Source: Zygnema circumcarinatum SAG 698-1b (taxonomy: Eukaryota; Plantae; Zygnematophyceae). Taken from it: a stretch of 64,000 nt of DNA. This document shows positions 14,624 through 62,873 of the stretch, piece after piece. The position numbers and the translations under genes were made by a program. The DNA is taken from assembly GCA_037447605.1 (NCBI GenBank), contig CM074805.1, positions 558,001-622,000 of the forward strand. The letters run 5' to 3'. The notes beneath the pieces were generated by a model. It made no database searches. It was not told where the DNA came from and saw only the letters and a list, made by a program, of their open reading frames with translations. Positions within the stretch are counted from its first letter, which is position 1. Each line of letters opens with the position of its first letter.

Positions 14624-19823
<5,200 letters not shown>

Positions 19824-22023: not shown

Positions 22024-28560
<6,537 letters not shown>

Positions 28561-35027: not shown

Positions 35028-37054
35028 TTATGCAGATTAAATTTGAGTGCGCCCCCCCCCCCCCCCCCCCCCCCCCCCCNNNNNNNNNNGAGATTCTGAG
35101 TATCTGCACATGCATGATAACACAAGAATTCAAAAATCACCGCCAATACTCGTAGTAGGCATTGTAATAACAGCAAAGCAACGATCAAATTATGGACCAA
35201 AGAAACATTTAATGGTTTAGGACGAGTTACGCAAACCACATCAGCAGATTGCAGTGATCAGAGCAAAACAGGGTAGAGGTCGCTTGCACAATATGCTGCA
35301 GATGCACACCTTCCTCGGGGAGATGCCTGAAATCGCCGCCAGCATCATAGGAGAAAAAACAGCGCACCCACTACAGAGTCAGAAAACATTTTTCACAAGT
35401 CATACCACAAGACGTGGTAACATGGTTGAATTCTTTCCATCGAAGATTGCTTGATCTCAAGTCCAGGACTTACCATGATGATTACTTCTCCTGAGTTTGC
35501 TGCGTCGCTATAGCCCTGGCTTCCAAAACAAGAAAGGCATCAAATTCCGGCGTACGACCGCTACCAAGTGACAAAACTGAATCAGCAGCTGCGAGCTTTC
35601 AAGTCTTGCAATCACTTGTACCAAAGTAGACTGTTTCACCTTGCAACCTCACATCATTCATCACTTCCACGCGAAAACCGTCAGCATTCAGCCAACAGCC
35701 TCAAACAAAAGCACCTTGACCACCCAGTTTCACAACAAAAAAACAGCAATCATCAACATCAAATCCTCCTCCTCCTGTGTCTATGAGCCTCTATTCCGTC
35801 AGATCTCTCACCTGCAAAACGCAAGCAACCTGCAGCAGAGGGCCCTGCACTGAGTCCTGCACGTCCCTTTCCTTCCTCGCCCTCTCGCCGACTTCACCCT
35901 AGCGCCCGCTGTAAATCTAAAGGCAGGTCAGAAGCCGTCCGTACCATACGGTAACCACGATCGTACAATGTCGTACATTATACCGTACACGTAAAGTACG
36001 GTACACTTTAACGAGCGGCTCGATAAAGACGTGTTAATTTCTCCTAATTTATCCGGAGAACTATATAGCGCCCCCCGCCCCCCGCCCCCCCCCTCCTTTT
36101 TTTTGGTTATCCCGCCCCTGTTTTTTTTTAATCCTACTCTCCCATTTTGGCTATTCCCATGTGTTAAGTCTGACCCGCCCTAATAGGGGGAGTCAGACCT
36201 TGACCGTCGCCAAATCAATTTCGTAAGCCTGTCGGGCGTATTAAGCATTGGCTAGGTACGCATTTCGGTACGGCTGTGTACGGCGGAGCCGCGGATCCCG
36301 ACCAGGAATTCGTACACGAAAGAAGTGACTTTTAGTAAAAGGAATTCGGGAATTCCAGAAGCGGTCAAGGTCTGACTCCCCTATTTTATGCAGAGAGATT
36401 AAATTTAGGCCTCTCCGCGCCTTTGTAAACAGTACGCGCAACGCAAGAGGAGATGGAGTTCGCCATGCGCCTCAGTTTCCGCCTTTACAGCTTGAAGCAG
36501 TTGAGGAAAGTCGGCCCATAAAAGTGCACCCCGAGGCCGACCACGAGCACGCGACCCCGCCACCCCCCGCCTCGCCTCGCCGACGACGCGGCTCGAGCAG
36601 CAGGCGAGCAGCCAACCCGCCGCGACGCGAAGGGAAGGGCGGGAGGGGGGGCGACCGCCCGCCGGCTGTTCGCTGTTCCGTTACAGTTCCCAAACAGTTT
36701 GGCGGTCGAACGGCGGAGCCCCTGTTCGCTATTGGCAGTTTGTGGCAACGGCTCGCAAGGAACGCCGCCAGACTTAGCGGACGACGCGGAACGGAAAGGA
36801 ACGGCCCGGCACGGAACAGCTCTTGTCCGCCCTGAGGACAGCCCTCAGGGACTTTCATTCTTTTGGAAAGCCCAAACTCCGTCGACTTTGCTCCAGGACA
36901 CGCCACGTGTTGCCTATTACGGTGGGGTGTCTGCCACGGCATGTGCTCACACCCAAGCAAGAATTTCACTTCGATCGTTTCTCACATAGAACCTGTTGTC
37001 ATTTGAAATTCCCGCTGGGTGCGAGATGGACGGCAAAGGGAGCGAGACGATAGG

Positions 37055-38130
37055 CGGAGGGGAGGGGGGGTGGAGGGGCAGGAGTGGGGGGGGAGTGGCA
37101 GTGGAGGGAAGGGGGAGGGGGAGGGGGAGGGGGAGGGGGAGGGGGAGGGGGAGGGGGAGGGGGGAGGGGGGGAGGGGAGGGGGAGGGGGAGGGGGGAGGG
37201 GGAGGGGAGGGGGAGGGGGAGGGAGGAGGGGGAGGGGGAGGGGGAGGGGGGAGGGGGAGGGGGAGGGGAGGGGGGAGGGGGGAGGGGGAGGGGGAGGGGG
37301 GGAGGGGGAGGGGGAGGGGGAGGGGGGAGGGGAGGGGGGGGAAGGGGGAGGGGGAGGAGGGAGGGGAGGGTGGTGGGGAGAGGTGGAATAGGGGAGTAAG
37401 TGGGGAGGGGGAGGGGGGAGGGGGGAAATAGGGAGGTTGGAGGGGGAAATAGGGAGGGGGAGGGGGAGGGGGAGGGGGAGAGGGGAGGGGGAGGGGGAGT
37501 GGGAAGGGGGAGGGGGAGGGGAGGGGGGAGGGGGGAGGGGTGGGGAGGGGGAGGGGGAGGGAGGAAGGGGGAGGGGGAGGGGGAGAGGGAGGGGGAGGGG
37601 GAGGGGGAGGGGGGAGGGGGAGGGGGAGGGGGAGGGGGAGGGGGAGGGGGGAGGGGGAGGGGGAGGGGGAGGGGGAGGGGGAGGGGGAGGGGGAGGGGGA
37701 GGGGGAGGGGGAGGGGAGGGGGAGGGGGAGGGGGAGGGGGAGGGGGAGGGGGAGGGGGAGGGGGAGGGGGAGGGGGAGGGGGAGGGGAGGGGGAGGGGGA
37801 GGGGGAGGGGGAGGGGGAGGGGGAGGGGGAGGGGGAGGGGGGAGGGGGAAGGGGGGGAGGGGGAAGGGGGAGGAGGGAGGGGAGGGTGGTGGGGTGAGGT
37901 GGAATAGGGGAGTAAGTGGGGAGGGGGAGGGGGGGGAGGGGGAGGAGGGGGAGGGGGAAGGGGGAGGGGGAGGGGGAGGGGGAGGGGGAGAGGGGAGGGG
38001 GAGGGGGAGTGGGAAGGGGGAGGGGGAGGGGGAGTGGGGAGGGGGGGGAGGGGGGAGGGGGAGGGAGGAAGGGGGAGGGGGAAGTGGGGAGGGTGGTGGG
38101 GAGAGGTGGAATAGGGGAGTAAGAGGGGGA
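37055..38130. repeat. About 1.1-kb (GGGGGA)n array with a thrice-repeated spacer GGGTGGTGGGGWGAGGTGGAATAGGGGAGTAAG
   Basis: Direct; spacer at about 37368, 37884 and 38091. Confidence 0.92.
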
Positions 38131-38593
38131 GGTTGTGTTTTGTGTTTTCTCAGGTCGGTTGGAGGGGTTTACATTTTATGTGTAAAGTAAACCCTCGCAG
38201 CCCCTCGAACGCCACAAAGGAACTGTTTGTCCATGCATTGACCACTCGGTTGCAGTTTCTTGAAGCTCGGACCAACCCATGAAACACGTTTCGAGCGAGA
38301 AAAAATATCTCGTGTATATATATACATATTTGTTGCACATTAAGTACACACCATACATGCACTGCTTCGCCACACTGTGCGCCGTCGAACTACCAACGAC
38401 TACCGCAAAGGACCCTTCTGTTGCAGAACGGCCCACATCTCCCATCTGCTACCAACGCGAGCACTCGCTAATCCCACGAACAAAACGCGCTTTACAAAGG
38501 AGCGCTGTGAGTGAGCCCAAGCCCCCGCGCTCGGTCGCTCGAGCGGGCGAGCCCACAACCCTAATCGCGTCGCGTCGCGTCGCGTCGCGTCGC

Positions 38594-41500
38594 CTACTGC
38601 AACAGCGCGAAGCTCTTGACGCTCTCGCCGAGCATGTTCCGCGCGGCGGAGGACGCGAGCTCCGTGGCGCGCTCCGTCCCCTGCACGCGCTCGCGCGCTC
38701 GGACGAAGCGCGCGAAAAGGCAGTCCGCGCGGAGGAGGCCCGAGGAGCGGTAGCTCGCCACGCTGCCGTCCAGAAACCCTTCCGCGTCGTCTCCCGGCAC
38801 CACTTCGGCCCCGAAAACCTCACTGTACTCCAGCTTTTGATTCGCACTGCCACCCGAACGTCATTCTCAGAACAAGTGTCAGTCAAATGTATCTTGTGCA
38901 TAATTGGGCTCTGATCAGAAACAAAGCAAAGCACGGCATGACTCGTTGCAGGTAGGGCGAAAGAATGCGAAAGGAGAGGGGTTTTGCTTGATGTATGTCG
39001 GCACTCACAGTCTATCCTTGTGGTCGGAGCGGAAGGTCTGCCCTAAAACCCCATGCGCATTGTCCGACAAGTCGGCCACCGGCATTTCAAAGTCGAAGTG
39101 CACAACCCCGTCCGTGGGGGTCCTCAACATCGCGATTTCTGGCCGCAATGTGAGCCTCAAACTCAGCACATCCGCGACCTTGATGTGGAACACATCCACA
39201 AAGTCATCGCCGCTGCGCCTCTTCGCCGCGAGCCACTTCACTTCAATGTCGCCATTGGCGCGGACGGCAGAGTCTCCCGCCTGCCCGAGCTCCACATCCT
39301 GACCGTCGATCATGAGGCGGCCCAGATAGCCGCCATCGTACTGCCACCTGGCGCCTTCCCGTGCCGCCAGCAGGATGGTGTGGTGGCCCCAAAGGACGCC
39401 GATTTGGCGGATCCATGTGAGGGCCTTGTGCGGGTTGCTGCCCCACCGCCCGTAACGGCCGCCATAGAACACGTTGATGTGGAGGTGGGCGTCGCTGACG
39501 AGGCAAAAGGCGGTGTTGGGTTCGCCTGCTCGAAGTGCACGCATCCACATCCATCAACTTTGAAGAATTTGCAATTTCTCACAGCTACCTAAATTACCAT
39601 TAAGCAATGTTCAAAGGTTTCATGCTGAACACTGAAAAAGGGCTAGAAACGCAAAAACTGTCAACCTTACATGTTATTACAGATCAAAAAAACCATACCT
39701 GAAAAGTCGAAGCGGGAGCCGTCGGCCCCAGTGTAGTGGGGGTCTCCCACTCCCCCGGGAGAGGGGGCAGACGCGGCGGGGCAGCTCGCGTCCCTTATGG
39801 AGGGGGCGTAGCACGCCTGCACGCCCAGACTGATGTCGGCGGAGGTGGAAGCCAAGTTTGTGAGAGTCACGGCGCTGATCCATGCGTTACCCTGGAGAGT
39901 AGTGATAAGGGGGAGGAAGAGTGAGAGGCAGGGAGACAAATAGGGAAGAGGGAGGAAGAAGGAAGATTGCGTGGGAGGGCAACCAGGAAAGTGGATGGAG
40001 AGAGGAGAGAGAGAGAGGAGGATGAACGAGAGAAAGGCTGGGCAGAGCGAAAACGAGGCGGAAGGGAGTGGGGCAATACAGGTAGAAAGAATGATTAGAA
40101 AAAACAGGAAGGGAGAGAAAGACGGGAGAGTTAAAAGATTGAGAAAGAGAAGGTGGTAGAGAGCAAAACAAGGCAGAAACTAGTCTTCAACGGGTGAGAG
40201 ACACAAAGGAGTAGACGGAGGCCGAAGGAGAAGGAGAAGGAGAAGCAAATGGAGAAAAAGGCGGTCAAAGAGTAAAACAGAATGAGACGCGAAGAGTGAG
40301 TAAGAGCGAGAGAGAGAGAATGAGAGAGAGAGAGAGAGAGAGCTGACCAGCACGCCTCCGGAGCTGCACTGGCCGTTGTTGAGGATGTTGACGGGGCAGA
40401 GCCCGCTGGAGGCCGTCACGTAGCAGCCGTCGATCTGCGCGGTCGCGATCTGACCGCTGAGCGGATTGCCGCCCACGAAGAGCGCGCTCAGGAACTTCGC
40501 GTTCGCGGAAATGAGCGCCGATGTGCCCGTAGCGCCGCTGATGGCGACCTGCGGGCATGCATATGCGCGCATGCATGCATGCATGCATCCCCAAAGGTGA
40601 GGCGGAGAGAGGCAGGGTGAGGGAGGAAGGGAGGCGGCGAAGAATAGGAAGATGGAGAGAATCATCGAAATTCAACATTTATGTTCAAGGAACTGATTAG
40701 CAAAAAAGAAAATTATACTACAATGAATATTCTCCTATTGGAAACATCACTTTATTAGTTTATTCATTGACTTGGGATGATTGTAGAGAATGAGAGGTTT
40801 TGACGTGGTTACCTGGAAGCCTCCGCTGGCAGTGGTGCCCCCCGTGGCCCACACGTACGTGTAGGAGGTCTGCCCGGCCACGACGGAACTGATGCTGCAG
40901 TTGATGCTCACCTGGCACCGCATTAGGGCACACGTGGCACCACGGCGTTAGCCTACAATACTCCAACTCAAGTGGCGGACATCACATTGCAAGAATGAAA
41001 CTAGTGTGGTGAGAGTCAGAGAGAGAGAGAGAGAGAGATAAAGGGGGATGGAGGTGGGGATGAAGAGAAAGAGAGATTGGGGGAAATGGATGGATGAGGA
41101 GAAGCCGTACAGGGGTGAGCGCGTCCAGGAGGTCGAGGGTGCCGCTGAAGGAGCCGTCCCAGCACTTGTCGCAGAACAGCGATCCCACAATGGAGCTGCC
41201 GCTCTGCGCAACGCGCTTACAGAAAGGAAATTAGGACCAAACTGGGGGGTTTCAGGGACTGGAATTATGATACATTCGTTTAAGAAGGTCTAACTGCCAA
41301 AATTGTGATACCACGACAAGCCTTTCCACAAGTTTTCACTTCTAGTGCCGAATTATCATTTGTGCCTTCTGCGAAGCCTTTATCGTACCGCGGTGGGAAG
41401 CAAGGACTGGAGCAACGCAGCGCAGAGCACCCCAACAACCGCCACCCAACTTCTCCCGTTTGCAGCCATTGCTCCGACTCTCGCTCACTCTCCTTCGTCG

Positions 41501-43179: not shown

Positions 43180-46100
43180 TCACGAGGACTCTTTCAAAGG
43201 GGTCCACAATCGGTGCCTTACAGAGGAGCGTTTCACAGAATCTCCTAACTTTCGGGGACGCCGTGAGTGCCCACAGAGAGTGGGCCTCTCCCGCTGCACA
43301 ATTTGAAGGGTCAATCGCATTGCTTTGAGACTAAATGGCACAAGTAAATGAGAGACCAATGGCAGCTCTATGGCCTCAAAGTAGTGACAGTCTGTCACTG
43401 ATCCCCATCCAAGATTGGATGTATTGTCAATGTCTTCTTGGTTGCCATCCCCAACCCCAAAGACGAAGTCAACTGGAAGCACTCCTTGCTTTAATTCCGA
43501 AAGCACAACTCCAACCTTGGTGTCGAGACCTGATCCATAGAACGAGAATGTGTTGACTGATGGAGCTTTCCTTGGCGTTATGAGCCCATTGAAGAGGGGA
43601 AACAGCTTCGGAGCAAGTGTGAAGTTGGATTCTAGGAAGAGTTCCTGAAATGAGAAGCCACTCAATCATAACTTGAGTTCTAAGTGCAGTTTTAACCCAT
43701 TCAAAGCATCACAATAAAGTGCAAACCATGTCAACTCAGCTCAAACAACTCATCAGCACTGCACGATATGTCACGATATATCACGATATATGATACCTGA
43801 TAGTCTTCAGCTGTGTAGTTTCTTCTCTCAGTACGAACCAAGACCTCACTGGAGCCATAAACTTCCGGCTGTGCCATAGAGAAGTAGATGGACGGCCAAG
43901 ATTCGAACACAGAGGCGGAATCAGGTCGGGGCGTTGAGAAATCAAAGGACGAGAAACCAGTAAAAAGGTACTGCACAAAGCTGCCTTGCCCTGCCCAATT
44001 GCCCGCATACGAGATAAAACCAGCTGCAGCCCTCCACCCAAAAAACCCGAAGTCATGCATCAGATCAACTTCAAATCGCTCAAAAAAACAAAAACAAAAA
44101 AAAAGTGAGTTTGCAGACAGCAAGTAGAGCCACTCTCTCACCAACATATTTGTCGGACCACTCTCGCGACTGCGAGTGAAGGAGGGCGAGGGCCATCGGA
44201 CTTCCATTTGAGTGCGCCAACACATACACTTTTTTCCCTCCACTCTTTTCGTAAGCTGTCTCTACAAGCCCCTTTGAAGCCTCCAGAAACGAGTGGCCAG
44301 GTGTCACATCCACATTGGGCGCCATCCGGTAGTCGTAGCAAGCTACAAATAGTGACTGACCTGCAAAGCAGGGCAAGCCAAAGCTCTCACCCACGTCTTC
44401 AGAAGGTTTGTAAGGTCCTATAAACTCAACACATTTACCGCAAGAAAACCCTCGAATGCAGAAAGAAAGTTTGGAGGATATTTCGAGTACCTGCAGAGTA
44501 GCCTGCAGCCATGAGACGGAGGTAGAGAGGAATGTAGATAGGTGCACACTGCAAAGCTCCAAAGTCTGCCAGTTCGACTGTCACTCCGGGAAGGCTCGAG
44601 AAGCGTTTTTGGGACTCTGGATGGCTCTCATTGTATTGCAGTCGGAGGGACTGCAGGGAAACGAACAGAGGGAATCGAGCAGTCAAAATTTGTTTGTTCT
44701 ATATTCTCAATTTAGCCACCAATAGGACGGGAGAGTGGGAGCCTCTTGCCAGATCTGAGTTATTGAGTAAGTCCCTAAGGTCAGAACACGCAGTGGACAA
44801 GCACCTCAAGCCCCTACAAACACGTGAGATAAGGCCTCCTCACTCATCTCCTTGTAACATTAGTTGCCTAAGCAGGTCGTTTCATTCTCAGCGACTGTCC
44901 GCAACCAGGTTATCAGTTACTTTACACTTCAAGACGTGAAGTCGTTTTAGCAGTCTGCTCCAGATGCTTCTTGAGGAATTGAAAGCGAGCAAACGCTGCG
45001 AACTGCTTGCAGCATTATCTCAAGCCGCGTCTAACATCTCGTCGCCTATTCAGTACGTTTCATAACTCTTAACTGAAGCTCAAATCCGTTCCTTGTCGAA
45101 CCTCCCCTCCCTTAGCCCTAACTGTCGAAACTCATCATCGACAACGGCACCTCGTCGCGAAAGGCTAACTAAAGGTTAAGGTTAACTTGGAGGCCATGCA
45201 CTTCAGTCAGTCGTTGTCTTCAAATCCCCCTCTCACTCCCGGTCACTATCCAGATATATATATTTTTTTTCCGAACCCCTCGGAGATTATCAATAGAGCG
45301 CATTCACCCTCTTCTGACCCTTCTCTATTCCCCTTTAAGCATACCGCTGTCAAAGCTATTCCCTTTCTGAAACAATGCCCGAAACGAAAAGCAACATGTC
45401 CTTTTTGACATCGAGGAAATTAGAACAGAGCTGCTTCAGCCCTAACCTTGCAGCTTTTACAAAATTTGGATCGGTTCGCGCCCCTATTCATGGTATGATG
45501 GTGAGTGTCTGCAGTGAGTGTCTGCAGCGTTGCCAATAAAAAGGAAAGGGGCATGTACACAATTCCTAACAAATAAATTAGAAAATACAACACGTACCTC
45601 TAACGCGCATCTCTCACTGACTTCCCACGGAAACAAGTGGCCCGAATACACCTCAAAACTTGCAGAAGGCGGGCAGATGCTTGAAAACGTTTGATCCCGC
45701 AGCGTGACCTGCCCATAAGCCGCCGATCATGTCAGAGCATGAGAACATGCTGACAGAATTAATGGATAGAATTAATGGATGCTGGTTTCATATCGAAGAT
45801 GAATCCTCTCAAACACCAAACATGAGTTATGCATTATGTATCGAAAAGACATTGGAGAAACTTTCTGGAACATTTCAGGGGAAATGATCTTATGAAGCAG
45901 TTTTGAAAGGGGCCGTGTCCACTTGGAAGTAAGGAGCGAGTGGGAGAAGCGAGAGAGGAGGCGAGTGACGGTCTCACCTTTAAGCGGGAGGTGCTGTAGG
46001 CGGGGAAAAACACCACTGGGTGCTTGACGGGCGGAAAATTCCATGGGAATGAGGGCACGCCATCTCCATGAACCGCGCTGAGAAGCAGAATAAGGGCAAG

Positions 46101-46223
46101 GAGCATGAGAGGGAAGGAGAGGAGCACTGCAACACCAGCGCAGCAGAGGCCCCGGGATCCGACGGACAGCAAGCCTCTGCTCACATAGAGAATTTCGCGG
46201 GATAGCCGCAGAGCTCTGATCAT
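43180..46223 (-). CDS. Lecithin:cholesterol acyltransferase / group XV phospholipase A2-like alpha/beta hydrolase, secreted or signal-anchored, 6 exons
   Basis: Hydrophobic N-terminus; HPVVFFPAYSTSRLK/VTLRDQ...C/...PGVTVELADFG/ACYDYRMAP...KKVYVLAHSNG (nucleophile Ser)...WSDKYV/AGFISYAGNWAG/...YGSGLDT...GDGNQED (Asp)...VSH (His). Confidence 0.88.
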
Positions 46224-48322
46224 GGCCGCTGCCCAGAGAGAGAGGGAGAGAGATGGAGAGGTAGAGGGAGGGGGAGGGAGAGGGTGAGGGAGAGGGACAG
46301 GGAGAAGGCCGCGCTGACCCAGTGTGAAGTAAACAGGACTTTCCTCCATTAATACAAGCTCGTAGTCAAGCATCTCCAATCGCGACGTGCCATGTATGCA
46401 TAAATGATACGTGGCGGGTCGCTATTGGAGGTGGTCAATTTTAGTGCGCGAAGAGAAAAAAAAGTCCCCGGCGAGCCTTCCTTTTCGGACGATGGAGGGC
46501 CAAAAGACGGGCAGGTGGAAAACGTTTTGGTGACCGGTCGAATCTGATTGCCCAGATCTGTATTGCATTGTAAACATATCGCAACATCGCCGGCGTACCG
46601 AAAATGACCGGCAGAAATGTGCCGGTTTTGGCAAACTCGAGTCTCGAGACTGTACATGTAGTTTTGCTGGCCGGCAAAAACTCGGCACTTCGCACGTAAG
46701 GAGCGGCAGCCCGGCGTCGGTTCAAGTTCTGTCGGTCGTAGCCGATACGTCAGCGATGTGACAATATCTCCACTATGGTCCAGAAACGACAAAGATGGCC
46801 GCCCTGTCGACTATCGCTGACGCGCCCGTTAGTACCACCGACAGGTTGATGATGTCTCCTGATTGGTTGTAGCGGATTTGATGATGTCATACGAGTGGAA
46901 TTTAGGTTTTTGCGCTGTCTCTAAGGAGGTCCAAATGGAATTTCTGTAGGCCAGAGAAAAGTCGTAGAGAGGTGTACGGTCAATTTGTCGGTTAGTTTTT
47001 TTCTTCACTAGAAGGATTGCAGTACCGTAAAACCGAACAGATTGAGAAATTGTGAAACGAGTTTAGTTAATCTCTCAATTCTCAATCTTTTGAATAGGGC
47101 TGAACTCTGAACACAGGAGGTTAAAACTTTTTCGATTTAAGAAAGCGAAAGCGAAAGCTTTAAGAAGCGTTTTTAAGAAAAATTTCAGCGACTCAATGTG
47201 TTCGGTGATTCGGTCGCAAGTGTGGATTCCAATTTTTGCCACGCTAGTTCTGTGCGATTCGAGGAATCCGGTTAACCCGGGGGGCCAGTTCTACCGTACG
47301 ACTCTTCCCGCGAGACCGATCAACAATTTCTTTACGAACATCCGAGTCCACTCGCTTTACGATCCGCCAAAATTTCATTGTTGGTTGGTGGACCCAAGGA
47401 AAATCCAAGTTGAACACGAAAGATAATTAATTGTTCAATGATCAATTGGTCCTCCAAAAAAAATCATTGAGAAAAAAATAGGAATTCATTTCTCATCTCA
47501 AAATTAATCGTGGTCACAAATATGGGATTTTTCTTCAAAAAATGGTTTTGAAAGTTTCTTTTTTTTTGTGAAGGCAAAATCTTTAATTTCTTTTTTTCTC
47601 AACCTGTTCGGTTTTACGGTACCAAAAAGGACTCTGTCGTCGTGACAAAAGACAATCTGAAGATACGGTAGGGATAATCGACGGTTAAAGGGATTCGCAG
47701 CCTGATTAGTCGGCATAAAGCGACAAATTTGTGCCGACATGTACCAACAAAAGAGCGGCCAGTCAATCAAATCGACCGTCTGGCATGCGGACAAGGATAG
47801 AAGGGCTTCCGGGCAGGAAAAAAAAACGCAAGTCAAGGTTTGACCGCCTCGGCTGAGATATTTAAGCGCAGACACATGGACAAAGAACAACGTAATACAG
47901 AAAGCTATTGAACTGTCAGTAAAACTGTGTGACACATGGACGTGCGGCATATGGCTAATCGTTCTGCGGTTCAGTAAGCGCCGCCGGCACTTTCGCTTTC
48001 CGCGCGTGACATGAGTCACGCGGAGGCTTAACTTGCGCAACCGCTGCTCCTTTTCAGCTGACAGTGAAAGGGGAGCCATGGATGGCGCCCTGCAACCCTC
48101 TGTGACTGGGACATCCACGTCTAATAAAAATCCATGGCGGAGAACTCGATATAATTAATATTTTTTTCTGAACTTAGAGGAGTAGCTATGGTTGGTGGCC
48201 CATTGGCGGACTTCCAAAACGGTGGCAATGTAAGGGATCTCAACGTTTAAAAACCAATCAGGGTCGTGTAATCAGGGTTCGAGTCTCCTTATAGTTGAGC
48301 CCAAGTAAAAGGCTCATTCAGC

Positions 48323-49747: not shown

Positions 49748-51133
49748 CTACTCATTGGCTGGAGTGAATTTCAACGAGACACTGTTCACGCAGTGGCGCT
49801 CATCAGTGGGAGTGGGAAAGCCTTCTCCCTTGAAGACGTGGCCGAGATGTCCTCCGCATGCAGTGCAGGTTATTTCGATCCTTCTCCCATCTGAATCAAC
49901 CTGCACAAAGAGAACAACTATTTCAAATAAGCATACCACATACCCACTGAAGCAGAATAAGTTTGAACAGCAAGGCGTGCAAGCGAATTAGGCATTCTTG
50001 ACTCCACTGACAACTGCCGAACACTTTCAAACATAAATGGGAGTAAATAAATTAAAATACTCAAGATAAAGCCTCCGATTTTCCCAATTTATCCATTTAC
50101 CAGTACCCTGTGAACTTTTGAAACTTATCAGAATCAGAAACCAAGTGAGCTAAACATCCTTAGCTAATGACTCCCAAGTAAATGGAAGTCGCTTCTCGGG
50201 TCTAGACGGCATATCCCATCACCCTGAAACAAGCCCCTCAGAACCTCCCTCTTTCCGGAAACGTCCAGCTGCAGATGTCATGGAATCCGCTCAGAAAGGT
50301 GCGAAGGAGCACTGGCCAGACTCGGCTCCCTTACACGGCTCCACAGGGCACGCTAAGAGAGAAACCGAGAGGAGCAAAGATAAAGACTTACATGTCTGCT
50401 GATTGCGCCAGGAATGCCGTCGTAAAACGCCGGCCAGCCGCAGCCGGAGTTGAACTTGGTCGTCGATTTGTAGAGAGGCGTTCCGCAGCCGGCGCATGTG
50501 TACACCCCCTCGTCGTAGTGCTTGTTGTACTCCCCCGTGCCGGGATACCTGCAACTCGCACAGCACAGACACAACATAACAACTAAAAGTCAGCTGAGGG
50601 ATTCCCGCACAATCAATATCCCCAGAAAATAAGCCCCTGAATAAAAGCATCCAAATCAACGGCCCACCGTCCTCACCTCTCCCTCTCTACCTCCCTGTCT
50701 TTCACCTCCATCAGCTCGACCAAGTGTCTCTCTATCAGTCACCATATCTCTGTCTTTCACTCTCTCTCTCTCGTTATCTGTCACACCACAACCCCCCCTC
50801 CCTCCCGCTATCCTGGAGTCAGGGCAACTCTTACTCTGTGCCCTTCATCCGCAGGATGCGGAACTGCTCCGGACTCAGAATCGCCCGCCATTCTTCTTCA
50901 CTATTCTTCACGCTGGTCGCCATACTCCTCACGATGGTCTTCCCTCGCTTGAGGGGTCCTCTCCCTCCCTGAGAGACCTCTGCCCCCGCGAAGGACTTGC
51001 CGAAACAGAAAGAAATCGGCCTTCCGGCAGAAGCTACGGAAACCACAGACGACGAAGGTGCGGCAGCGAGCGAGGCAAGCGGTGAGGCGGTTGCAAGAGG
51101 CTTGAGCAGAGCTGTGAAGTAGGGCCCGGCCAT
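49748..51133 (-). CDS. MSRB: Peptide methionine-R-sulfoxide reductase B, copy 2, with N-terminal plastid transit peptide
   Basis: complement(join(49748..49900,50392..50548,50835..51133)); Ser/Ala-rich, acid-poor leader [29 protein letters not shown]...TIVRS followed by [12 protein letters not shown]...GCGWPAFY...RHCVNS. Confidence 0.96.
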
Positions 51134-51314
51134 GGCTGCCGCTTTATCTGCAACCAAACGACTGCAAATGCACTCCTGCAGCGCTTTCCTGCTCCCTTTC
51201 TTTAGGTACGACCACGTCCGTACAACCAAGTTCGTACACGTTCCTACGTTCCTACGCTTCTTCCTTTCATTCGAGAGGCGTTACGTTCACAATGGAGGAA
51301 GGTCCACTGAACAA

Positions 51315-52181: not shown

Positions 52182-55100
52182 TCATACCTTATGCCTCTCC
52201 CTGTCTTCAATACCATTGCTTCCATTTATACTACGTTCCTTCTCATCCTTTTCAACCACCCTCTTTGACGCCCTCTTTCCCTTCTCCCTCTGCTGATCAC
52301 TCTCTAAGATAAAGTCTGACTCTCTGCTGTTGTACGCCCATCTCTCACCTTTCCCTCGTCCTTCAGTAACTCTAGAGTCACCATCGCCCTTCCGCTCTCG
52401 CATCTCTCTACCACTAACTCGAACCTTGCGAGCCTTGTCCTCCCACCCTTCCCCTTTTCGTCTTCCCTTCCCCTGTTCTGCCCTGTCGCCTTCGTAATTT
52501 CTCCTTGGTCTCGCTTCATCGTGATCACTACTCCCACTGCCCCGACTGTCCATTTCCCTCCGCCGATCCATAGTTCTCTCCCTCCTTTCCCCCCTCCCTC
52601 CATCCGATGATTCAGAAACTTCGCTTTCACTGGTTGCCTCCTTCCGACGCTTCTTACCCTTCTCTGCTCTTTCCTTTGCCTCACTCTTCTTCTTTCTCCG
52701 CCTCCTGCTTGCTCTCTCCTCTTCCGTGTCATCACTTGAGCTCTCACTGTCTTCCGATTCACTCTCCTCATACCTCTTTCTCTTCCTCCGCTCTCTGCTG
52801 TCCTCTGAATCTTCTTCCTTCTCCCTCTTTTTCCTCGACTTCCTTTTCTCGTCTTTTTCCCGTTTTCGCTCTTTTTTCCGTGCTTTTCTCTTCTCTGCTT
52901 TTTCCTTCCGTCGTTTTTTCTTCCTCTTCTCTTCCTGTTCTTCCTTCCTCCGTTTCCTTGAGAACTGCTCGAGAAGTTCTGCGGGGATGACAGTTCCCCC
53001 AACTTCCCTTCCTCCACCAAGGAATCCTGTAACCCTCGTGAAAAATATCCCGGTCATTTTATTTGAGCAACATGCAGTAAGTCATAGAGCATAGACTCGC
53101 TATTCCCTCTCCCCTATGTTTGGTTCAATACTCCGAAAACATGAAACAACGATCAAATAAAACTCTGCATAAAGGCCAAACAGAATGAGGCATGCTCCTT
53201 TCCAAATGAACTTACACACCTCCATACTCATCAAATACACATTCTTCTTCTTCTTCTGGAAGGATCTGTTGATTAGGATCATCCAGCTTGAACCCTCCTC
53301 TCGGAGGGCTACAGCCACCAGGTTGCTGCTTCAGCTCCCACTTCAGGGGCTGCAACAAAGGCAAAAACATACTCAGATAGAATATTCACTACTTCCTAAC
53401 CGGTGCTTCCTCGACTGAATCTGTTCATCTGCTTTCACTCATACCTAGGAGGGGTTTTTCTTTTCCTATTCCGAGTGGCACACGACCCACCCGATTGCTT
53501 TATAAAAGCAGTTCAAATACTCCATGTTTTCACGCAACAGTCCAAACCAAGGGCCGACGTTCCATATGTTGCACGTGGTTACAGATTTAAACATACTGCC
53601 TATTCCGCCGAGTCCTGCAAAATCTGTCAAACGCAATCCTACAATGGTATCTTACTTAGGGTAACCATGTATTGAATAACCCGTCAAACGATGGGTCGAA
53701 CACAATATTGACCTGACTTCCATGGTGTGTCCTTTTTTAGACCAAACACATACACACTCACCTCTGCGCTTTCTGTCATCATGAGCGAGATAGGATCTTC
53801 CCGCCTTTGCCTTTCCAACTCGACGGCTGTGAACGTATCTTTCATGGGGCATTCACGGTCTCCACTTTGATGGCCCATGGCCCCGCAACGCGCACATTTC
53901 ACATTGCGGATTTCAATTCCAAATGGCTTTGCTCTTCCGACAACTCCAGTTTCGTACCTGCAGGAAATACAGAAACATTGGGAGTTCCTTATTAGGCTCC
54001 TGTATAAAGTATGTACCAATAGCTTCCTTAAGGGTTCCTCTCTTATCTCATGTCAATATTTCTTTTAAACTTAACGGAGACAGGCCCTGAAAATGAAAGA
54101 CTCGCCGGTTTTCAATGGAGCGCCTTTCCATAGAATTTAGCGCGAACAGAGAAGCCGAACAGTTCAAAAGACTTGGATTTGAAACAGTCGGCCCTCTAAA
54201 GTCCGGCAAAAGAAAACCCCACTGTCACATGGCAAAGTAGCCGAGCAGAACATAAACCTACCGAGGTGCATCTTTCAACTCCGGAAATTCCTCCGCGGTG
54301 GCGATTGTCCTTCCAAAAATATCTTTTGCACGCGGTTTTCTCTTCTCCCCTTCTGGCCCTTGAATTGAAGACGGAATCAGACCTTTTTCCTCCCTGCAAG
54401 CGCACATTTTCCAACTACTGTAAGAGGCAGTTCCGGCCAACTGATTGCTGAGCCCCCCCACTCACCTTTTCATTCATAGAATTTGCGTTCAAGTCGATAG
54501 AATGATGCCCAAGTTACATGACTCTACCCGTTGCCCGCTCCTCCACTCACCCCCGCTCTGGGGAAGGCCTTGCGTTCCATTTCAGCTTGATCACCCATTG
54601 TTCCTTTTTTCAATTTTCGAACTACGAAAGGTCTGAACATCGACATGCGCATGCTTTCTAGTTCCTGCTTTGTCAATCCCAGCCTGCCTGTGCCCTTTGT
54701 GACTTACTTGTCAGGGCCGCCTATAGCAGCTGCGATTCCACTGCTTGCAAGCGCCTTCTTCTGCTCGTCCGCCATTTCCGCTGCCCTTGCGCTCTCTGCA
54801 TTGTACCCGGGAGGCTTGGTGTACATGAAGCTAACAGCTTGCATGGCCTCCAGCTGTAGGACACCCATGAAACACAAACGAGATGACTAATTGCAGTTTT
54901 GCAGTGGCACCATATACAAACATGGTCTGAATGATGCACTCTTTCCTGTTTGCAACTTGCGCATGTCAAGTTTCACACTTTTGCGTCGAGGATGTAGCTT
55001 TCTTTCAACGAAGTGACGAAGTGATCGAAGGGACCAATCCTTCATAACCACGGCCATGAACGGAAGTAAGGAAACCAAAGACACAAACCAAGTGCAAAAC

Positions 55101-55864
55101 TCTCGTGAACAGACCTCACTTGCTTAACATTTTCCACCGCAGAAACAGAAAGTCGCGACCTATGACGACAGAGAAATTTCACAATCATAACTAAGAGACA
55201 GTTTCCCTGCCACAAGCTCATCTTGCAAACTATTCCGAGAATGCTACGCTTGTATTGAAGTACCTTTTCTTTCTCCTTTTTCGATAGCATCGCAGCCTGC
55301 TTCAAGAAGTCCTGCTCCTGCGAGAACTGCATGCAACAGTCCATTCCGCCATAAATGTAAGCATGACTTCCCAACACCACATCAAGCCCATGGAAATCCC
55401 ATGGACACAGAAAATTCGAAGAAAGATTTAAATTGGAATATTATGTTAGAAACAAACCTAACGTTCGTTCTCATGGTGTCCCCTACCTTAACTTACCCAG
55501 CTTAAATTCTAAACCTTACATTAAGCGGGGTTGCCAACCTTATCATAACTCTAACCATATCAAACGCTAACTTTAAATGTACTGGAGTCCTTGATATAAT
55601 CCCGATCCAAATCCTAGTCCTATTCCTAGCCTGAACCCTACAACCCGCAACCTCAGATGTGCAAAGCGGCATCACCTCCTTCGCCACCTCCGTTTGAAGC
55701 TTTGAGTTCTGCAGATGTGTCTGTTCTGCAATCCATTTGCGTCTCTGGTTGGGATACGAGAGCGGGTGCCATGGCTTCTGATTCAAGTAGTTATGCGACC
55801 ACGCAGTGCCGGACTTCAGCTTGAAGTCCGCCTCCTCCGCCGGCGCCTTCCCGTCCTTGCGCAT
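52182..55864 (-). CDS. Cir_N domain + CCHC zinc-knuckle protein (CIR1/CWC25-related putative splicing factor) with K/R/E/S-rich tail
   Basis: LKSGTAWSHNYLNQKPWHPLSYPNQRRKWIAEQ (Cir_N)/VSFMYTKPPGYNAESA/EEFPELKDAPR/KPFGIEIRNVKCARCGAMGHQSGDRECP (CX2CX4HX6C-type knuckle); long charged last exon. Confidence 0.9.
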
Positions 55865-57697
55865 CGCTGTATGGTGTCGCCCCGGGGGCAACGCTCGTCT
55901 CCTTGATTGCTTCGAACTAACCTGCAGCCGCAGCAGCCTGCAGAGCGCTTTCAATTCGATGGGAGTCCAAGAATGGCCGTCTTTGGTTTGCCGTGTCTGC
56001 CACTCGTTACCATTTCAGGATGTTTTTTCATATCTGCACTTTCCTAAATACATTTGATGGGGTCGCCTTCGTGAGATCAATGACAATCCGCTCTTCGGTT
56101 GAGGAGCATTATTGCGAACAACTTAAAGTGAGAAAGTGCGGAATAGGGTGCTGCAACGGCACTACTACCCCCACCCTGCGACAGGACTGAGTTCAGGTTT
56201 GAGCTTTGAAGTTTGAACTTAACCACTGTCAAAATACATATTCCAGATAGCCCTTCAAGAGGGAAGCCACGGCGGCAGATTTGCAGCCAATTACTAAACA
56301 ACTAAGCTAAACTAAACTAACCAAACTTACTAAACTTTTCCAAATTGGCACAAACGACGTCCCGGCCAGGAGCGCTTTATGTCGAAGATCTGTTCTATCG
56401 TTTGTGACTAACCAAGTAGCCACAACTTGGCTACCCATTATTGGCTGACTAAAAGGTGAGTCAGCCTCGTCAAGATTCGGTACCTCGCCTCTCGCAGTCG
56501 CTCATGGGACCTCTCTGGGGCCTAACCAACCGGTGCTCGCCACGTGGAACCTTTGTCCCATTTTGCCTACTGGAGTGGCGCCACGTAGCCCTGATCATCT
56601 GGCCGTACTACAATGTACAATTTGTACGGTCGGTGGGCATTTGGATCAATGCGAATCTTCCGCGGTAGAAAAGCTTTTACTGTACCGTTTCTGGTCCGCG
56701 AGGCGTACGAAAAGAAGACTTGACGTTCTGTCCAATGACGAGATGACGCGTTTTCGGTGGAGAGACACGTGGTGGAACAGGAGTGGCCATTTCAGGCATA
56801 AAATCAGCATAGAAAATCTTTTCGCTTAAATGTTAACATGGAACTCGACAAGAACTAGAGATTTTACAACATGGAGAACTCCACAGCGTTAAGAACGACA
56901 GACAACGGTAAACTGGAGCATGGAACGTCGTTGCTCTGAAGGCGATGATGGCAGCCGAGGGCCTAGTGTATGGCCATAGCTTTCTGAAGAGGCCATGGCG
57001 GCCGGGGCTGCCGTGCACTCCAAAGGTGTCTTCTCTTGGCTGCAGATATCTCCGTTGATCGCCTCGGCATGATGACATGTGTGCAGGCGAGGTTCACTTT
57101 CGAGGGTGTTCGGCCCGTAGAAGATGCTTTGTGGCTGTTGCAGAGGTAGGTGGAGGGACTTCCAGTGAAGGGGGACGCCTGGATTCCTCTCTTGCAGCAG
57201 GGCAAGGAGGTGCAAGGACTGCAGCGGCGGTAAGGAAAACTCCCCTTTACCTCTTTCCTCCTTTCAAAGGAGGAAAGTGCCGGAATCTGGAAAGGATGGC
57301 TCGGTTAGGGTTTGACTTGCCAGTTGTCCTACACGTGACGTTCATGGATGCACGTGTTTGATCCCTCCTTTCGATATTTAATTAATTATATTCGTGTGTT
57401 CGTTTTAGGTCAGGCTTAGGAAGACTGAGATTTCTCTGACAGAATAATGTTGCGGGCATCCAAATCTTGCTTTTTGCTGGATTTTTCCTTGTTCAATACA
57501 TTTTTAGGGTATTCCGTTAGCTGCAGACAAATAGTGATGGGGCTTAGTGAGGGCTGACGATGAGAGGCGAAAGATCTTCATTTCCTGTTGAAGCAGATTT
57601 TCCATGGTCAGTATTGTAGCGTTCGACATCTTGAAGTCCTAAATGATTCAGCTCATCCTTTGTCATCTTTCACCTTCTTTTTTTTTTAGGTAGTGTG

Positions 57698-60600
57698 ATG
57701 GCGGTCAGGAGCAGAGTTCCGCAGCGGCTTTGGCTCCATTGTTTCCTGTTTGTGGCCTGTCTAGTTGCCGCGCCAATAGCAGGTGGACATGTCATCCATG
57801 GTAAGCTCTTACAAGGGCCCATTGCTGCGACTCATTTACTTTACCTTCGTCACGACCAACTTGATAATAGTGTTGGTGGCGGTCGCGAACTGGAAGAGTT
57901 GAGCGTTTGGAGTACAGTGGTCTGGGGATTTTGTAGGTTCAGTTATACCTTTAGCGTGGGTGTTGTTTTTACTGGCATTTACACGAAGGTGGTAGCCATC
58001 ACTTTGATTGCAGGGAAAACAAACGATCTTGTAAAGTTTTTTAAAGAGATCGATAGGGATGGCGATGGAGAAATTCAGCATTATGAGGCTGCAGCTTCTG
58101 CAGGGGTAAGTGTGCAAGAACGTTGATTTGCTCATTTTTCCAATCGGAACATTGAAACAAACAAACGAATCTGACTGTTTTCTTGTCTTCGTGGCACTTG
58201 ACTTCCCATACTGTTAAAGAACTGATTTCTGGCGTTCACGCCTTCCTTTTGGTCCCGATCATCGTTTTAGCAATGCGGGAGTCCCTTTCAAGAATTGTGT
58301 TTGCTCAAAAAGAGTGTAAAATGCTATGAACTGCATCCTCGTTCTAGCCTATGCCGTTGGTCAACTTCTAGTATGGGCTACTTCTCAGCTTATCATACTC
58401 TGTAAAGTTCTACATAATCTAAACGGTAGCTGCGACTGCTGTTCATTTTAACCCCTGACCTAGTGCGATTTTGAGCACACTATTCCATTGATTCAGTCAG
58501 AGCCCCTACTTTGCGCTTCTCATCGTGAAATTGGCAACTGCTGTGCCCTACTGCAGCTCTTTCAGGTTCTTCCAGATGGTGCAAATCCTCATTCAGACGG
58601 AGAGGAAACAACTACGTCAGACCCTTCAACACTGCAAGTCGCAGACTTGGATTTCAGCTATGGAGGGAGCACAATATGCGCAGCAGAACTTGTGGTACGC
58701 AGGGTCTCTCAAGAGTAGAGTGGGAGAAGAATGAGAAGGAGGGGCTATCCGCATAGTATGTTCGTTGCAGTTAATCACTTTGCGATCCTGCAAAGGGATA
58801 GGATAGGGTGTAAGATAAGCTCTTAGCCCCCAGCTCGTAACTGACTTGCTTTTAATTGATCCTTTTCGCTTGTCACACTGCAGGAGCATCTGGGCAACAT
58901 GCTCACAGGAGAGCAAGTGGTAGAATGGGTCAAACATGGCCTCCGTCTGCCGCAATACGCGGAGGCCTTTCAAAGAAACGCTATTGTTGGTTTAGATTTT
59001 CCGACTTTAATCTCAGATGATAGCAGGTCACTTAGTGAAGACTTGGGCGTGCAAAGCTCTTTACACCAGAAGAAAATTCACCAGTCAATCATGCGGCAGA
59101 TCTTTGGGCTGGGTAGACCACCAGGCCCCCCCAGAGCCCTTGAGTGTAAAGCTACCCCTTGTGGTTCAATTCAGCTTCAATGGGACCCCCCAGTCATTGT
59201 TGGAGTTCCACCTGTTCACAAGTATTTGGTCCAAAGGCGGCCTATGTCGACTCGTTCAGCAGCATGGGTAGAAGTGGGTGACCCCAATGAAGATGCTTTG
59301 TTGGATAATGGTAATCTATCCCCTGGGGTGCCCTACATATACAGAGTGCAGGCATGGGGGGGGCACGGGTCTTCGGAATGGGTAACGGTGGAAGGATGCT
59401 TGACGCTGACAGCTCTCGTAAAGGATTGCACTCTTGAAGGATGGGACTTCGAGAATGCGGATATACAGGCTATCACTTCATCATTGCTAGGAACACAGGT
59501 ATCAGGAGAAGGACGGGAGCAGAAAGGGGAGAAAACAAAGGCCACTCACAAGAGCCATTTCTGGAGTTACATGTACTCTGTCAACGGAGGCCTTGTGATG
59601 ATTGGGGTCTTGGCTCGGTTCAGTTTTTTCTCCAAAATGGCATTCACTCTTTTGGGGTTTCTTCAAGCGAACGTGGTACGAAAGCTTAAGTTAAAATATG
59701 CTCTCTCAAAAGCGAGCCCCTACTTTGCTGTTCGCATGTTTGCGAGATTTGTGGAAGCTGTTGTGTACTGTGTGGTCTGGGTGCAAGCCACTGCTAAAAG
59801 GGCCGTTGAGTCCTTATTGAGGGCCGGACATTTGGGGGGTAGGACGGAAGTAGGGGTGGGTTCGAGGGAGGGAGGAGGGCGGAGATGGTGGGAGCATGAC
59901 CTGAGCACTCCTGCGGAGTACACATGGGATGAGATGATGGCAGCAGTGAGTAAAACGGTGATGAGCAAAACGAAGGACATGGGTGGGACAGGTTCAATAG
60001 AGCATGCAGAGATGAGGCTAACTAAGTCAGAACCTATGCTCAGCCGTTCTTCATCAGAAGCGAGCAAGTCATCTGCTGACGGATTGTGGCCCTCGACTTG
60101 CACGAGTAGTAGCAATGGGGGTGGAAAAGGGAACAGCAGTACGAGTGGCAGCGGAAAGGAGGAATGGTGGAAACAGGAGGGAATTCGATCCTTAGACGGA
60201 AAGAATCTTTCCGCGGAAGATCTGAGAATTTTAGGGGCCATTGCTGTGTCTTCCCAAGACGCAGAGACGACAGTAGGGGGGAGGGAGGAGCTTATGCGCA
60301 GGCTAATGCTAATCAGCCGCAAATCAAGTGGTCTGAGGTCGGGAGGTGATAGGAGCAGCCACTCTGGGAGTGAGAGCGAGGATATGGAGGATGAGGAAGA
60401 GAAGGATGCTAATCAGTTTGAGCACAGTAACCACGGGTCGGAACTCAGAAGGGAAAGCAGCGAAAGTTCAAATGGGAGTCAGAAAGGGAGGTTCAGGTGA
60501 GAGGATAAATGCGATTTGTATTGTCTGCTAACGTCATTGTCTTCAATCTGCTAGCTTGATGCACGAGTACATGCTGGTTGACTGTCTCCCTCTTCCTTTC

Positions 60601-62873
60601 CCCTGCATCACCCTGTCTTCTTTTGTATTCGCTCGATACAGACGCTTTTCTTCATACAACTCTTGTGATGTTCAGTTCATCCATTCAAAATGCTTGAATC
60701 TTTGTAATGCCGATCCGTCCCTACAAACGGCATCACCGACTCGCTGTGCGGTATTACAATCCAATGTCAAGATAGCCATACTATCGGTACAAATTGCTGA
60801 AAAATTAGAGTTGTTGTTATATTAAATCGCAATTCTGATCCTGATCGGATGGCTGTCCTGCATGGCTGCAGGTGCAATGCTGAGGGCTGCCCTGTCCGGT
60901 TTGACAGATGGCACAGTGTGACTGACTGGCGAGCAAACCTCTCAAAGCATTACTGCAGAGATTGTCAGGGAGTGTACTGTATAAAGCATACCCGAATCTC
61001 ACCACACGGGTCAAGGGGGCAGTGCGGGCTTGATAGCAAGTGCATCTGCTACAGCTGCTTTGCTCGCCTCCCAGCTAACGTGCAGGCAAATCTGGAGAGG
61101 CAGAATAAGCTGAGAGCAGGGCCTCCTGTAGGCACAGTTTCAAGTTCTGCAAGTGCTGCAGATGAGCATGGTAGCGGTCAAAAGTTTAAGGTGACAGGAG
61201 CAGTTGTAGGGTGGCTTACAGGGCATGATCATGAAACCCAAAAGAATGCAGCTTCAATGAGCCACTCCGTTTCATTAGATGAGGAAGGTAGAGGGGCAAC
61301 AAAGAATGGGGCTGCTAAAACAGGTGTTTTGCGACAGAGGTCCCGGTCGCGTTCACCTTTAAGAGAGGCTGTTGGGAGTGAAGTGAAAGTGGTAAGGTCT
61401 GTTTCAGCTGGGCAATCATCAAACAGGAAAAAGAGTTTTGGAGGGTTTCCGGAAAGCTTGGGACTAGGGAGTCTTAGCGCTAATTCTAGAGGTAGCAATA
61501 CTGAAACGACGGACTTGATGGATTCAGAAGACCATGATTCGGATTCAGTAAGGGCATCCGGCTTTGCTTTTCGGCCATCAGGTTTAAGAGACCTTGAAAG
61601 GCATGCATCAGCTCAACTGAAGACAGAAATGGACGAAGGCACCGACGAACAGCGTTTGCCTTTCTTTTCGCTAGGGGGATCGACAATTGACAATTCAGAC
61701 AGGGGAAGGGCGAATAAGCAGAAGTCTGAGTTGTGGAAGGTGGGAAGTGGGCCTTTGCGACCTGTCTCTACTGAATATTCCCCAAACGATAATAATAATA
61801 AGCTTGAAAAGTATTTGTCATCACCGTTAAACGGTTGGGGTGGTGGAAAGAGTCCTCGTGCTGCAAGCAAATCGCCAATCAAAACTAGAGGAATTTTCGG
61901 ATTGGGAGGAAGTTCTGTTGGGAAGGAGCAGAAGGAGCCAAATGTGGAAGTGAGCAGAGGGGCAGAGTCAGATGCTGCTTTGAAAAAGCATTCAGCGTCA
62001 GGACCCCCAATTCTGGTGAGACTGATGTTGAATCTACTTGTTCTGTTTGCATATTTGTCAGTGTTACGGTTTAGTAACGAGTTAATGCAAGGGCCCTGAG
62101 GGGGGAAGGGTGCCTGGAAGTTTCTCTTTGTTCCTTTCGTTCTTTTTGTTCCTTTGTTCCTCAGCGTAGCATTGAGAACCAAGGAGTTGGCTCTCACCTC
62201 TCTCAAATTGGTTTCGTACAAGCTTAACTTTTCCTTTCGTCGTTTTGCTTTCCGTCACTTTATTTCGCTTCAGGTTGATGCGATCCATCCCACCTTCGAG
62301 TCTCGGAGCACATCTTCAGAGGAATTTCATGGGTTTCACGGGCCAACCCTCAGTGAGCAAGGGGTCTCACCAGCCCCTTTGCCAAGTCCACCTTCAGAGA
62401 CCATAGCGCTGCGTGGAAGCAGCTCATTGGATTCCGTAGACGACGAGCTCAGCAAAATTGCAAGCGAGTTGAGGTGGCGCATGTGTACTATGTATGCACT
62501 AAGGAATCGGGGTTCAATGTCCCAAGAAAGCATCAGCGGCTCTGCAGAAGGTGACAGTCACAGAGGGTCGCCTGGTTCAAGTAATACGATTGGAAGCGGT
62601 GGAAAGGCCTCCATGGGGGGCATGGCAAGGGGGGCCTCAGTGAAAGGGAGGGAGGGAGGGGGGGCTCCCACTGAGGGAGGTAGAGGAACAGAGTGGGGTA
62701 AAGGAAAGCCTCCTCGACCTCCTCCTACGGACGCCCAGAGGAGATGGTTGAAGGCGGGCATTTGGGCTATTGGGAAGGAGCTGGAGAGGAGGAAATCCTT
62801 CACAGAACAGACGTCAGGTGGTGAGACTTCAGAGAAGCTAGGCAAGCGCGGGTCCTCCAAGTCTCACGGATAG
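57698..62873 (+). CDS. STIM-like EF-hand/SAM membrane protein with FN3 and FYVE-like zinc finger, about 1226 aa
   Basis: join(57698..57800,58014..58105,58566..58694,58884..60496,60872..62015,62274..62873) = 3681 nt, all GT-AG and phase-consistent. Signal peptide; EF loop DRDGDGEIQHYE; SAM LTGEQVVEWVKHGLRLPQYAEAF...LHQKKIHQSIMRQIFG; FN3 (PGPP...LQWDPP...Y.V.R...W...LSPGVPYIYRVQAWGGHGSSEW); TM; Zn finger CNAEGC...KHYCRDC...C..H...CYSC. Confidence 0.9.

Follow-up and report, generated by a model that had tools for sequence, protein, structure and literature searches.

The window analysed here, a 64,000-nucleotide stretch of contig CM074805.1 of Zygnema circumcarinatum SAG 698-1b, carries on its forward strand a gene of six coding exons for a protein of 1229 aa, with the start codon at 57698 and the stop codon at 62873 (Table 1). 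The reading frame was uninterrupted when the exons were joined, and an in-frame stop codon was found upstream of the start codon. Six neighbouring genes were identified on the reverse strand and no functional link between them and the EF-SAM gene was seen. Long G/A-rich and C/T-rich simple-repeat tracts, with a GC content of up to 78% and extreme skew, were present at 19100-20400, 23500-24150 and 37000-38200.

Table 1. Positions of the EF-SAM gene features and of the neighbouring genes in the window.
Feature	Position	Strand	Basis
5' untranslated exon	56930..57229 (start approximate)	+	Loose contig ends match the exon end in three runs; 299 letters in run X1
5' UTR intron	57230-57689	+	Follows the untranslated exon
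Coding exon 1, with the start codon and a predicted signal peptide (about the first 30 aa)	57698..57800	+	19-residue hydropathy peak of 2.18
Five coding-region introns	57801-58013, 58106-58556, 58695-58883, 60497-60871, 62016-62273	+	Skipped by contigs
Exon 2: canonical EF-hand	58014..58105	+	Pfam EF-hand E 1e-4 on the 30-aa exon; family profile E 7e-9
Exon 3: acidic linker and hidden EF-hand	58557..58694	+	RNA joint; family profile E 1.4e-5
STIM-type SAM (aa 117-188)	58899..59114, in exon 4 (58884-60496)	+	Pfam SAM_1 E 1.2e-8
Fibronectin type III domain, FN3 (aa 190-283)	59118..59399	+	Pfam fn3 E 1.3e-6; FN3 matches in PDB
Predicted transmembrane segment (aa 337-355)	59559..59615	+	Hydrophobic block aligned in orthologues
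Unconserved G/S/P/D/E-rich linker (predicted cytosolic)	59784..60496	+	Composition and heptad scan
FYVE-like Cys/His finger (aa 650-715) and conserved helix ending NKLRxGP	60873..61124, in exon 5 (60872-62015)	+	
Short conserved helix LRWRxxxMxAL	62466..62513, in exon 6 (62274-62873)	+	Common to Spirogloea and locus L001
Basic amphipathic Trp-anchored helix, calmodulin-target-like (aa 1175-1201)	62706..62786	+	Common to Spirogloea, E 2e-11
Zinc-knuckle protein	53684-55380	-	
MsrB-like, transit-peptide-like start	50831-51229	-	By eye
LCAT-like	44080-46379	-	
Root-cap domain protein	39005-39550	-	
eIF2A	25933-27981	-	
Urea-transporter-like gene	14624-17382	-	By eye

Spliced joints at 57800/58014, 58105/58557, 58694/58884, 60496/60872 and 62015/62274, all with GT..AG introns, were found in all four public runs, which came from three studies. 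Since the introns were removed at GT..AG, the four runs contain spliced transcripts, although their records do not list them as RNA. A single contig of run X1 covered coding exons 1-4, so that one transcript encodes everything from the signal peptide through both EF-hands, SAM and FN3 to the membrane segment, and splicing of the EF exons to the SAM exon was confirmed. An earlier reading made from the sequence only had placed a luminal sensor module at 57698-59120; its modules were present there in one frame, but exon 3 begins at 58557 and the gene extends far beyond that span to its stop codon. An in-frame AG at 58565 was ruled out as the acceptor of exon 3 because the contigs use 58557. Contigs with intron 2 retained (stretch 58076-58585 of the window) were present in three of the four runs and, if translated, this RNA would meet a stop at 58126 and give a short secreted peptide with the first EF-hand only; it may simply be pre-mRNA. 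The spliced 5' UTR of approximately 300 nt (56930-57697) contains eight upstream ATGs with ORFs of 5 to 53 codons, the longest of which terminates shortly before the main ATG, and translational control by these ORFs is possible.

Database searches were made with single exons or with database orthologues, and structure work was done on full-length orthologues. The N-terminal hydrophobic segment was found in most full-length orthologues and is predicted to be a signal peptide. Exon 2 encodes a 12-residue EF loop, DRDGDGEIQHYE (58052-58087, aa 48-59), with D1-D3-D5-G6-I8-E12. Its ligand positions were kept across the family, D1, D/N3, D/N5 and E12 being retained in 42 of 42 rows with D1 and E12 invariant. 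The helix leaving this loop (58088-58105 and 58557-58574) was divergent in the window protein, reading EAAASAGLF against EATKFL in relatives and lacking two hydrophobic residues that the relatives keep; in this species the change may adjust how stable the domain is or how tightly it binds Ca2+. In exon 3, the hidden EF-hand was recognised by F-x6-I-x3-E-L at 58644-58694, in a degenerate helix-loop-helix that continues in the same frame into 58884, and the family profile paired this loop with the hidden EF-hand of C. elegans STIM. Streptophyte members have lost the acidic ligands of the second loop and have retained the F-x6-I spacing of the STIM hidden EF-hand, in which the two residues are F108 and I115 (PMC11506743). 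The second EF-hand was predicted as helix-strand-helix in the model of the Diphasiastrum orthologue P0004. SAM stands directly after the EF pair and is followed directly by FN3, which has conserved cysteines and gave a fold match of Z 16.4 with the model of an orthologue. Overall, the putative signal peptide, canonical loop, degenerate second EF-hand and SAM domain named in the sequence-only reading were all recovered.

The relationship of this head to STIM was examined by profile and by fold. The SAM of the window protein alone had C. elegans STIM as its best PDB match (E 1.7e-6, ungapped across 65 residues), and the entire EF-SAM of a lycophyte orthologue aligned with C. elegans STIM and human STIM1. 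An EF-SAM profile of 42 sequences matched C. elegans STIM (E 1.9e-15), STIM2 (2.8e-14) and STIM1 (2.2e-12) in PDB, and among the matches listed the STIM proteins were the sole structures spanning positions 6-147, the others covering the EF part only. With a SAM-only profile, the bits per domain were 42.1 for STIM2, 41.8 for C. elegans STIM, 37.4 for Shank2 and at most 21.5 for liprin SAMs; the STIM SAMs aligned without deletions whereas the liprin SAMs needed them. The affinity of the SAM, judged by profile and fold ranking rather than by a tree with STIM sequences, thus lies with STIM ahead of generic SAM families. For structure comparison, the EF-SAM of P0004 was modelled with AlphaFold2 (pLDDT 84, pTM 0.77), and it was folded alone because FN3 had swamped the first fold search. 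The EF pair was predicted to pack on SAM as one globule. The top three Foldseek matches of this model were the three STIM EF-SAM structures (TM 0.63, 0.57 and 0.53), and in a fold comparison with 48,161 chains the best match was C. elegans STIM (Z 12.8, 137 residues, rmsd 3.4), with only STIM chains covering both the EF and the SAM halves. The superposition proposed in the sequence-only reading was obtained for the orthologue as a prediction, in which AlphaFold2 may echo STIM packing learned in training; identity to STIM in the structure matches was about 20-22%, a Z of 12.8 is modest for a helical protein, and the independent sequence evidence weighs most. Annotation as a generic SAM protein or as a calmodulin was rejected, as the EF-SAM profile, the fold match and the SAM-only ranking all point to STIM. 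The EF-SAM of the family very probably shares ancestry with that of animal STIM, so the proposed STIM-like module was upheld by sequence profile and predicted fold.

The predicted membrane segment is only moderately hydrophobic in the window protein (1.49), and basic amphipathic segments extend behind it as far as about 59783. In 30 of the 35 sequences, more positive charge followed the membrane segment than preceded it, which agrees with a luminal N-terminus. Together with hydropathy and the block aligned in orthologues, this bias favours the luminal or extracellular N-terminus that had been proposed, as a prediction. Streptophyte members have one main hydrophobic block plus a second, weaker hydrophobic segment, so that their topology could be more complex. 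No di-lysine ER signal was found at the C-terminus of the protein.

Where STIM carries CC1 and CAD/SOAR, the Orai-gating part of the animal protein (PMC10758431), the family has a linker of 140-300 aa with 29-52% G/S/P/D/E. No conserved columns were found in the linker in the family alignment and no shared coiled coil by a crude heptad scan. Pfam SOAR gave no match in exons 4-6 at E≤1, nor in 10 homologues at E≤0.05. Since CC1 and CAD/SOAR are replaced by the linker and the FYVE-like finger, any coupling to Orai would have to use another mechanism. The finger has nine invariant Cys/His in 40 sequences and has eight zinc ligands in FYVE spacing. The top seven PDB matches of its profile were all FYVE domains (best E 1.1e-3) and Pfam FYVE was matched by 18 of 40 members (E 3.7e-6 for P0047). 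Beyond the eight FYVE-type ligands, further invariant His/Cys were seen at positions 26, 45, 51 and 57 of the finger alignment (60873-61070), possibly a third metal site. The likeness to the fingers of EEA1, Vps27/Hrs and WDFY3 consists of the two-zinc Cys/His spacing and weak but consistent profile matches. Unlike these, the family finger sits in a membrane protein that also has a luminal sensor, shows a His at one ligand position and three extra invariant His/Cys, and in green members lacks the lipid motif R(R/K)HHCR (SKHYCR in the window protein) and the RVC motif (KCIC). Some non-green members have RRHHCR and a finger closer to the canonical motif. The fingers of green members conserve another surface, RFDRW and HTRISPHG, which suggests a protein partner.

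Many algal members end in a Trp-anchored basic helix, of which the window protein has a looser version. The family motif profile of this helix matched the Munc13-1 peptide 2kdu_B (E 0.0097), a calmodulin target, and weakly an MLCK fusion. A strict 1-8-14 pattern, devised after the orthologues had been viewed, was present in 8 of 32 orthologues against 0.06 expected, and the window protein has only the loose form. The tail helix resembles the calmodulin-binding helices of Munc13-1 and MLCK in being basic, amphipathic and Trp-anchored, with 1-8-14 spacing in chlorophyte orthologues, but land-plant orthologues lack the helix. The net charge of the last 30 aa was +3 in the window protein and -5 to +5 across orthologues.

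Compared with STIM1, STIM2 and invertebrate STIM (PDB 2K60, 2L5Y, 6PW7), the window protein shares the predicted signal peptide, the canonical and hidden EF-hands, the STIM-type SAM, the predicted EF-SAM packing and a basic amphipathic element near the C-terminus, and possibly also the type I topology. It differs in that about 150 aa, made up of FN3 and a stalk, separate SAM from the membrane; the family also differs by the absence of CC1 and CAD/SOAR, by the FYVE-like finger, by having no consistent polybasic end and by its occurrence in green plants, a haptophyte and stramenopiles, STIM being holozoan. The protein is therefore not STIM proper, as CC1, CAD/SOAR and the adjacency of SAM to the membrane are absent, but the whole luminal sensing module is present.

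Family searches with SAM-FN3 queries returned full-length members with the same domain order from Diphasiastrum, Selaginella, Physcomitrium, Ceratodon, Sphagnum and Ginkgo. Such members were also found in the streptophyte algae Closterium, Spirogloea, Chara, Chlorokybus and Mesostigma and in the chlorophytes Ostreobium, Tetraselmis, Pedinophyceae, Picocystis, Gonium, Edaphochlamys, Polytomella, Tetradesmus and Pyramimonas. Beyond the green lineage, members were present in a Pavlovales haptophyte and the labyrinthulid Mucochytrium, and an Atlas cluster that groups 70 SAM+FN3 proteins, the majority from oomycetes, matched the EF-SAM model at TM 0.69, so the family probably occurs in oomycetes as well. 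The family is thus not specific to plants. Unnamed orthologues or close homologues of the same architecture include Selaginella LOC9637430, Ceratodon KC19_1G322100, Ginkgo Gb_13753 and Gb_01581, Chara CBR_g40157 and the oomycete Atlas cluster; some database entries of the family are partial. The homologues examined were labelled 'Calmodulin', 'SAM domain-containing' or 'hypothetical', and none was annotated as related to STIM. Six non-green members (P0017, P0047, P0069, P0072, P0084 and P0113), from a haptophyte, from a labyrinthulid or of unassigned origin, have two tandem EF-SAM-FN3 units and keep more acidic ligands in the second EF loop; some of them have an extra N-terminal EF-hand. P0004 stops before the zinc finger and is probably a truncated gene model.

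In the SAM-FN3 tree, the green clade (100/95), the clade of zygnematophytes and land plants (99/94) and the land-plant clade (99/98) were recovered, with the window protein in the second of these, beside Closterium with weaker support, which is in line with a zygnematophyte host and with the green-lineage gene of the sequence-only reading. The family tree follows the species tree, which argues for vertical retention since the green ancestor. Introns were found at matching places in the related genomic loci L002 and L003, and the gene is a single conserved one rather than part of an expanded receptor family. Among 241 million metagenome records scanned, 18 loci were found, and those placed in the tree fell with mosses, in a clade beside Ginkgo or outside streptophytes. 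One profile search in a word-index database returned only land-plant members. Close-pattern scans of bacterial and archaeal genomes and of viral contigs showed no relatives. No named angiosperm protein appeared among the results of four protein searches, a weak negative as some rows were unlabelled. Closterium and Spirogloea have no flagella and keep the gene, so a flagellar role, considered for the loss in angiosperms, was rejected.

[quoted passage not shown] 8 of PMC11085791. The range of the family, up to Ginkgo with no angiosperm member found, resembles this published range, and the proposed co-occurrence with Orai held as a clade-level comparison with the literature, not as genome-by-genome counts. 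The origin of STIM has been placed near the base of animals (PMC7016017) and STIM has been described as unique in combining EF-hand and SAM (PMC11506743). According to reviews, it is missing from Orai-bearing plants, green algae and diatoms, where another sensor must exist (PMC11085791, PMC8318260). The sequence-only reading had likewise described green plants as having no STIM, and store-operated entry in land plants has been posed as an open question (PMC11894410). A STIM match in P. infestans was dismissed as sharing the SAM motif alone (PMC4820453) and may be a member of the present family. The searchable literature yielded no description of the family; an earlier mention in subscription papers is possible.

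Overall, the reading we lean towards places the protein in the secretory pathway, most likely in the ER, as a type I membrane protein whose luminal EF-SAM has common ancestry with that of animal STIM and would work likewise. As the whole luminal sensing module matches STIM by sequence, the window protein probably senses like STIM. In STIM, the canonical EF-hand with bound Ca2+ retains the final SAM helix within the EF cleft; when Ca2+ is lost, EF-SAM unfolds and forms oligomers (PMC11506743, PMC10758431). By analogy, a Ca2+-dependent switch in the head is likely: with Ca2+ bound, the EF pair would stay packed against the final SAM helix as a compact monomer, and loss of luminal Ca2+ would destabilise EF-SAM and let the SAMs oligomerise. 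Because FN3 and a flexible stalk precede the membrane and a disordered linker follows it, clustering, and not a coiled-coil switch, would transmit the signal. Once clustered, the cytosolic FYVE-like fingers would have a higher avidity for a membrane that is anionic or contains phosphoinositides, with plasma membrane, endosome or vacuole as candidates, or for a protein partner, and so form a contact site. The Trp-anchored tail helix could provide feedback from cytosolic Ca2+/calmodulin. Orai is the leading candidate effector because its range from green algae to gymnosperms, diatoms and oomycetes, without angiosperms, resembles that of the family; action of the window protein on Orai is put forward tentatively. 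The absence of CAD/SOAR and CC1, the divergent EF-exit helix and the SKHYCR motif of the finger count against this reading as a whole.

An ER or other endomembrane location is moderately favoured over the cell surface; FN3, typical of cell-surface proteins, and the absence of a C-terminal di-lysine signal count against the ER. A cell-surface or wall-facing receptor would hold EF-SAM-FN3 outside the plasma membrane, sense external Ca2+ or a ligand with its STIM-like head, signal or undergo endocytosis via the FYVE-like finger and have no store role. We consider such a receptor unlikely: FN3 follows the sensor as in receptors and adhesion proteins and the tandem EF-SAM-FN3 repeats of the haptophyte and labyrinthulid members resemble receptor ectodomains, but the single conserved gene shows no receptor-type expansion and has a range like that of Orai. 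The C-terminus without an ER-retrieval motif would also suit a receptor, though to our knowledge STIM likewise has no classic retrieval motif.

The sensing half of the preferred reading is shared by another explanation that differs in output alone, namely a luminal Ca2+-regulated tether or sorting factor for contacts of endosome, Golgi or vacuole that is unrelated to Orai. Nothing in the protein resembles an Orai-binding coiled coil and the most conserved cytosolic element is the FYVE-like finger, nearer to canonical in non-green members, but the lipid-binding motif is degenerate in green members, where the RFDRW and HTRISPHG surface suggests a protein partner. The match in range with Orai would then be a coincidence due to a shared angiosperm loss, and angiosperms have lost many ancient genes; we regard this tether as quite improbable. 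Finally, an independent fusion of a generic EF pair with a generic SAM, with convergent likeness to STIM or an EF-hand that is only structural, appears very improbable. EF and SAM are mobile domains, the low identity noted above would fit convergence, and kinship with STIM was judged only by profile and fold ranking. Against this, the SAM by itself prefers STIM at the same length without deletions, the second EF-hand is degenerate at the same place with the same F-x6-I spacing, the order and membrane side are those of STIM with a similar linker, and reviews know no further EF+SAM protein (PMC11506743).

Whatever its function, the family contradicts the statement that STIM is the only protein with EF-hand and SAM. 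The STIM sensing module is pushed back before the divergence of animals from plants and stramenopiles, or was transferred early. With the reading of STIM ancestry and luminal sensing, the gene offers a low-copy candidate for the store sensor of plant and algal Orai channels. It is conceivable, though doubtful, that the family is both a non-animal branch of the ancient STIM lineage and the missing Orai activator in green algae, non-flowering land plants, haptophytes and stramenopiles, lost with Orai in flowering plants. If this is true, store-operated Ca2+ entry would predate the split of animals from the green, haptophyte and stramenopile groups, with the FYVE-like finger in place of CAD/SOAR.
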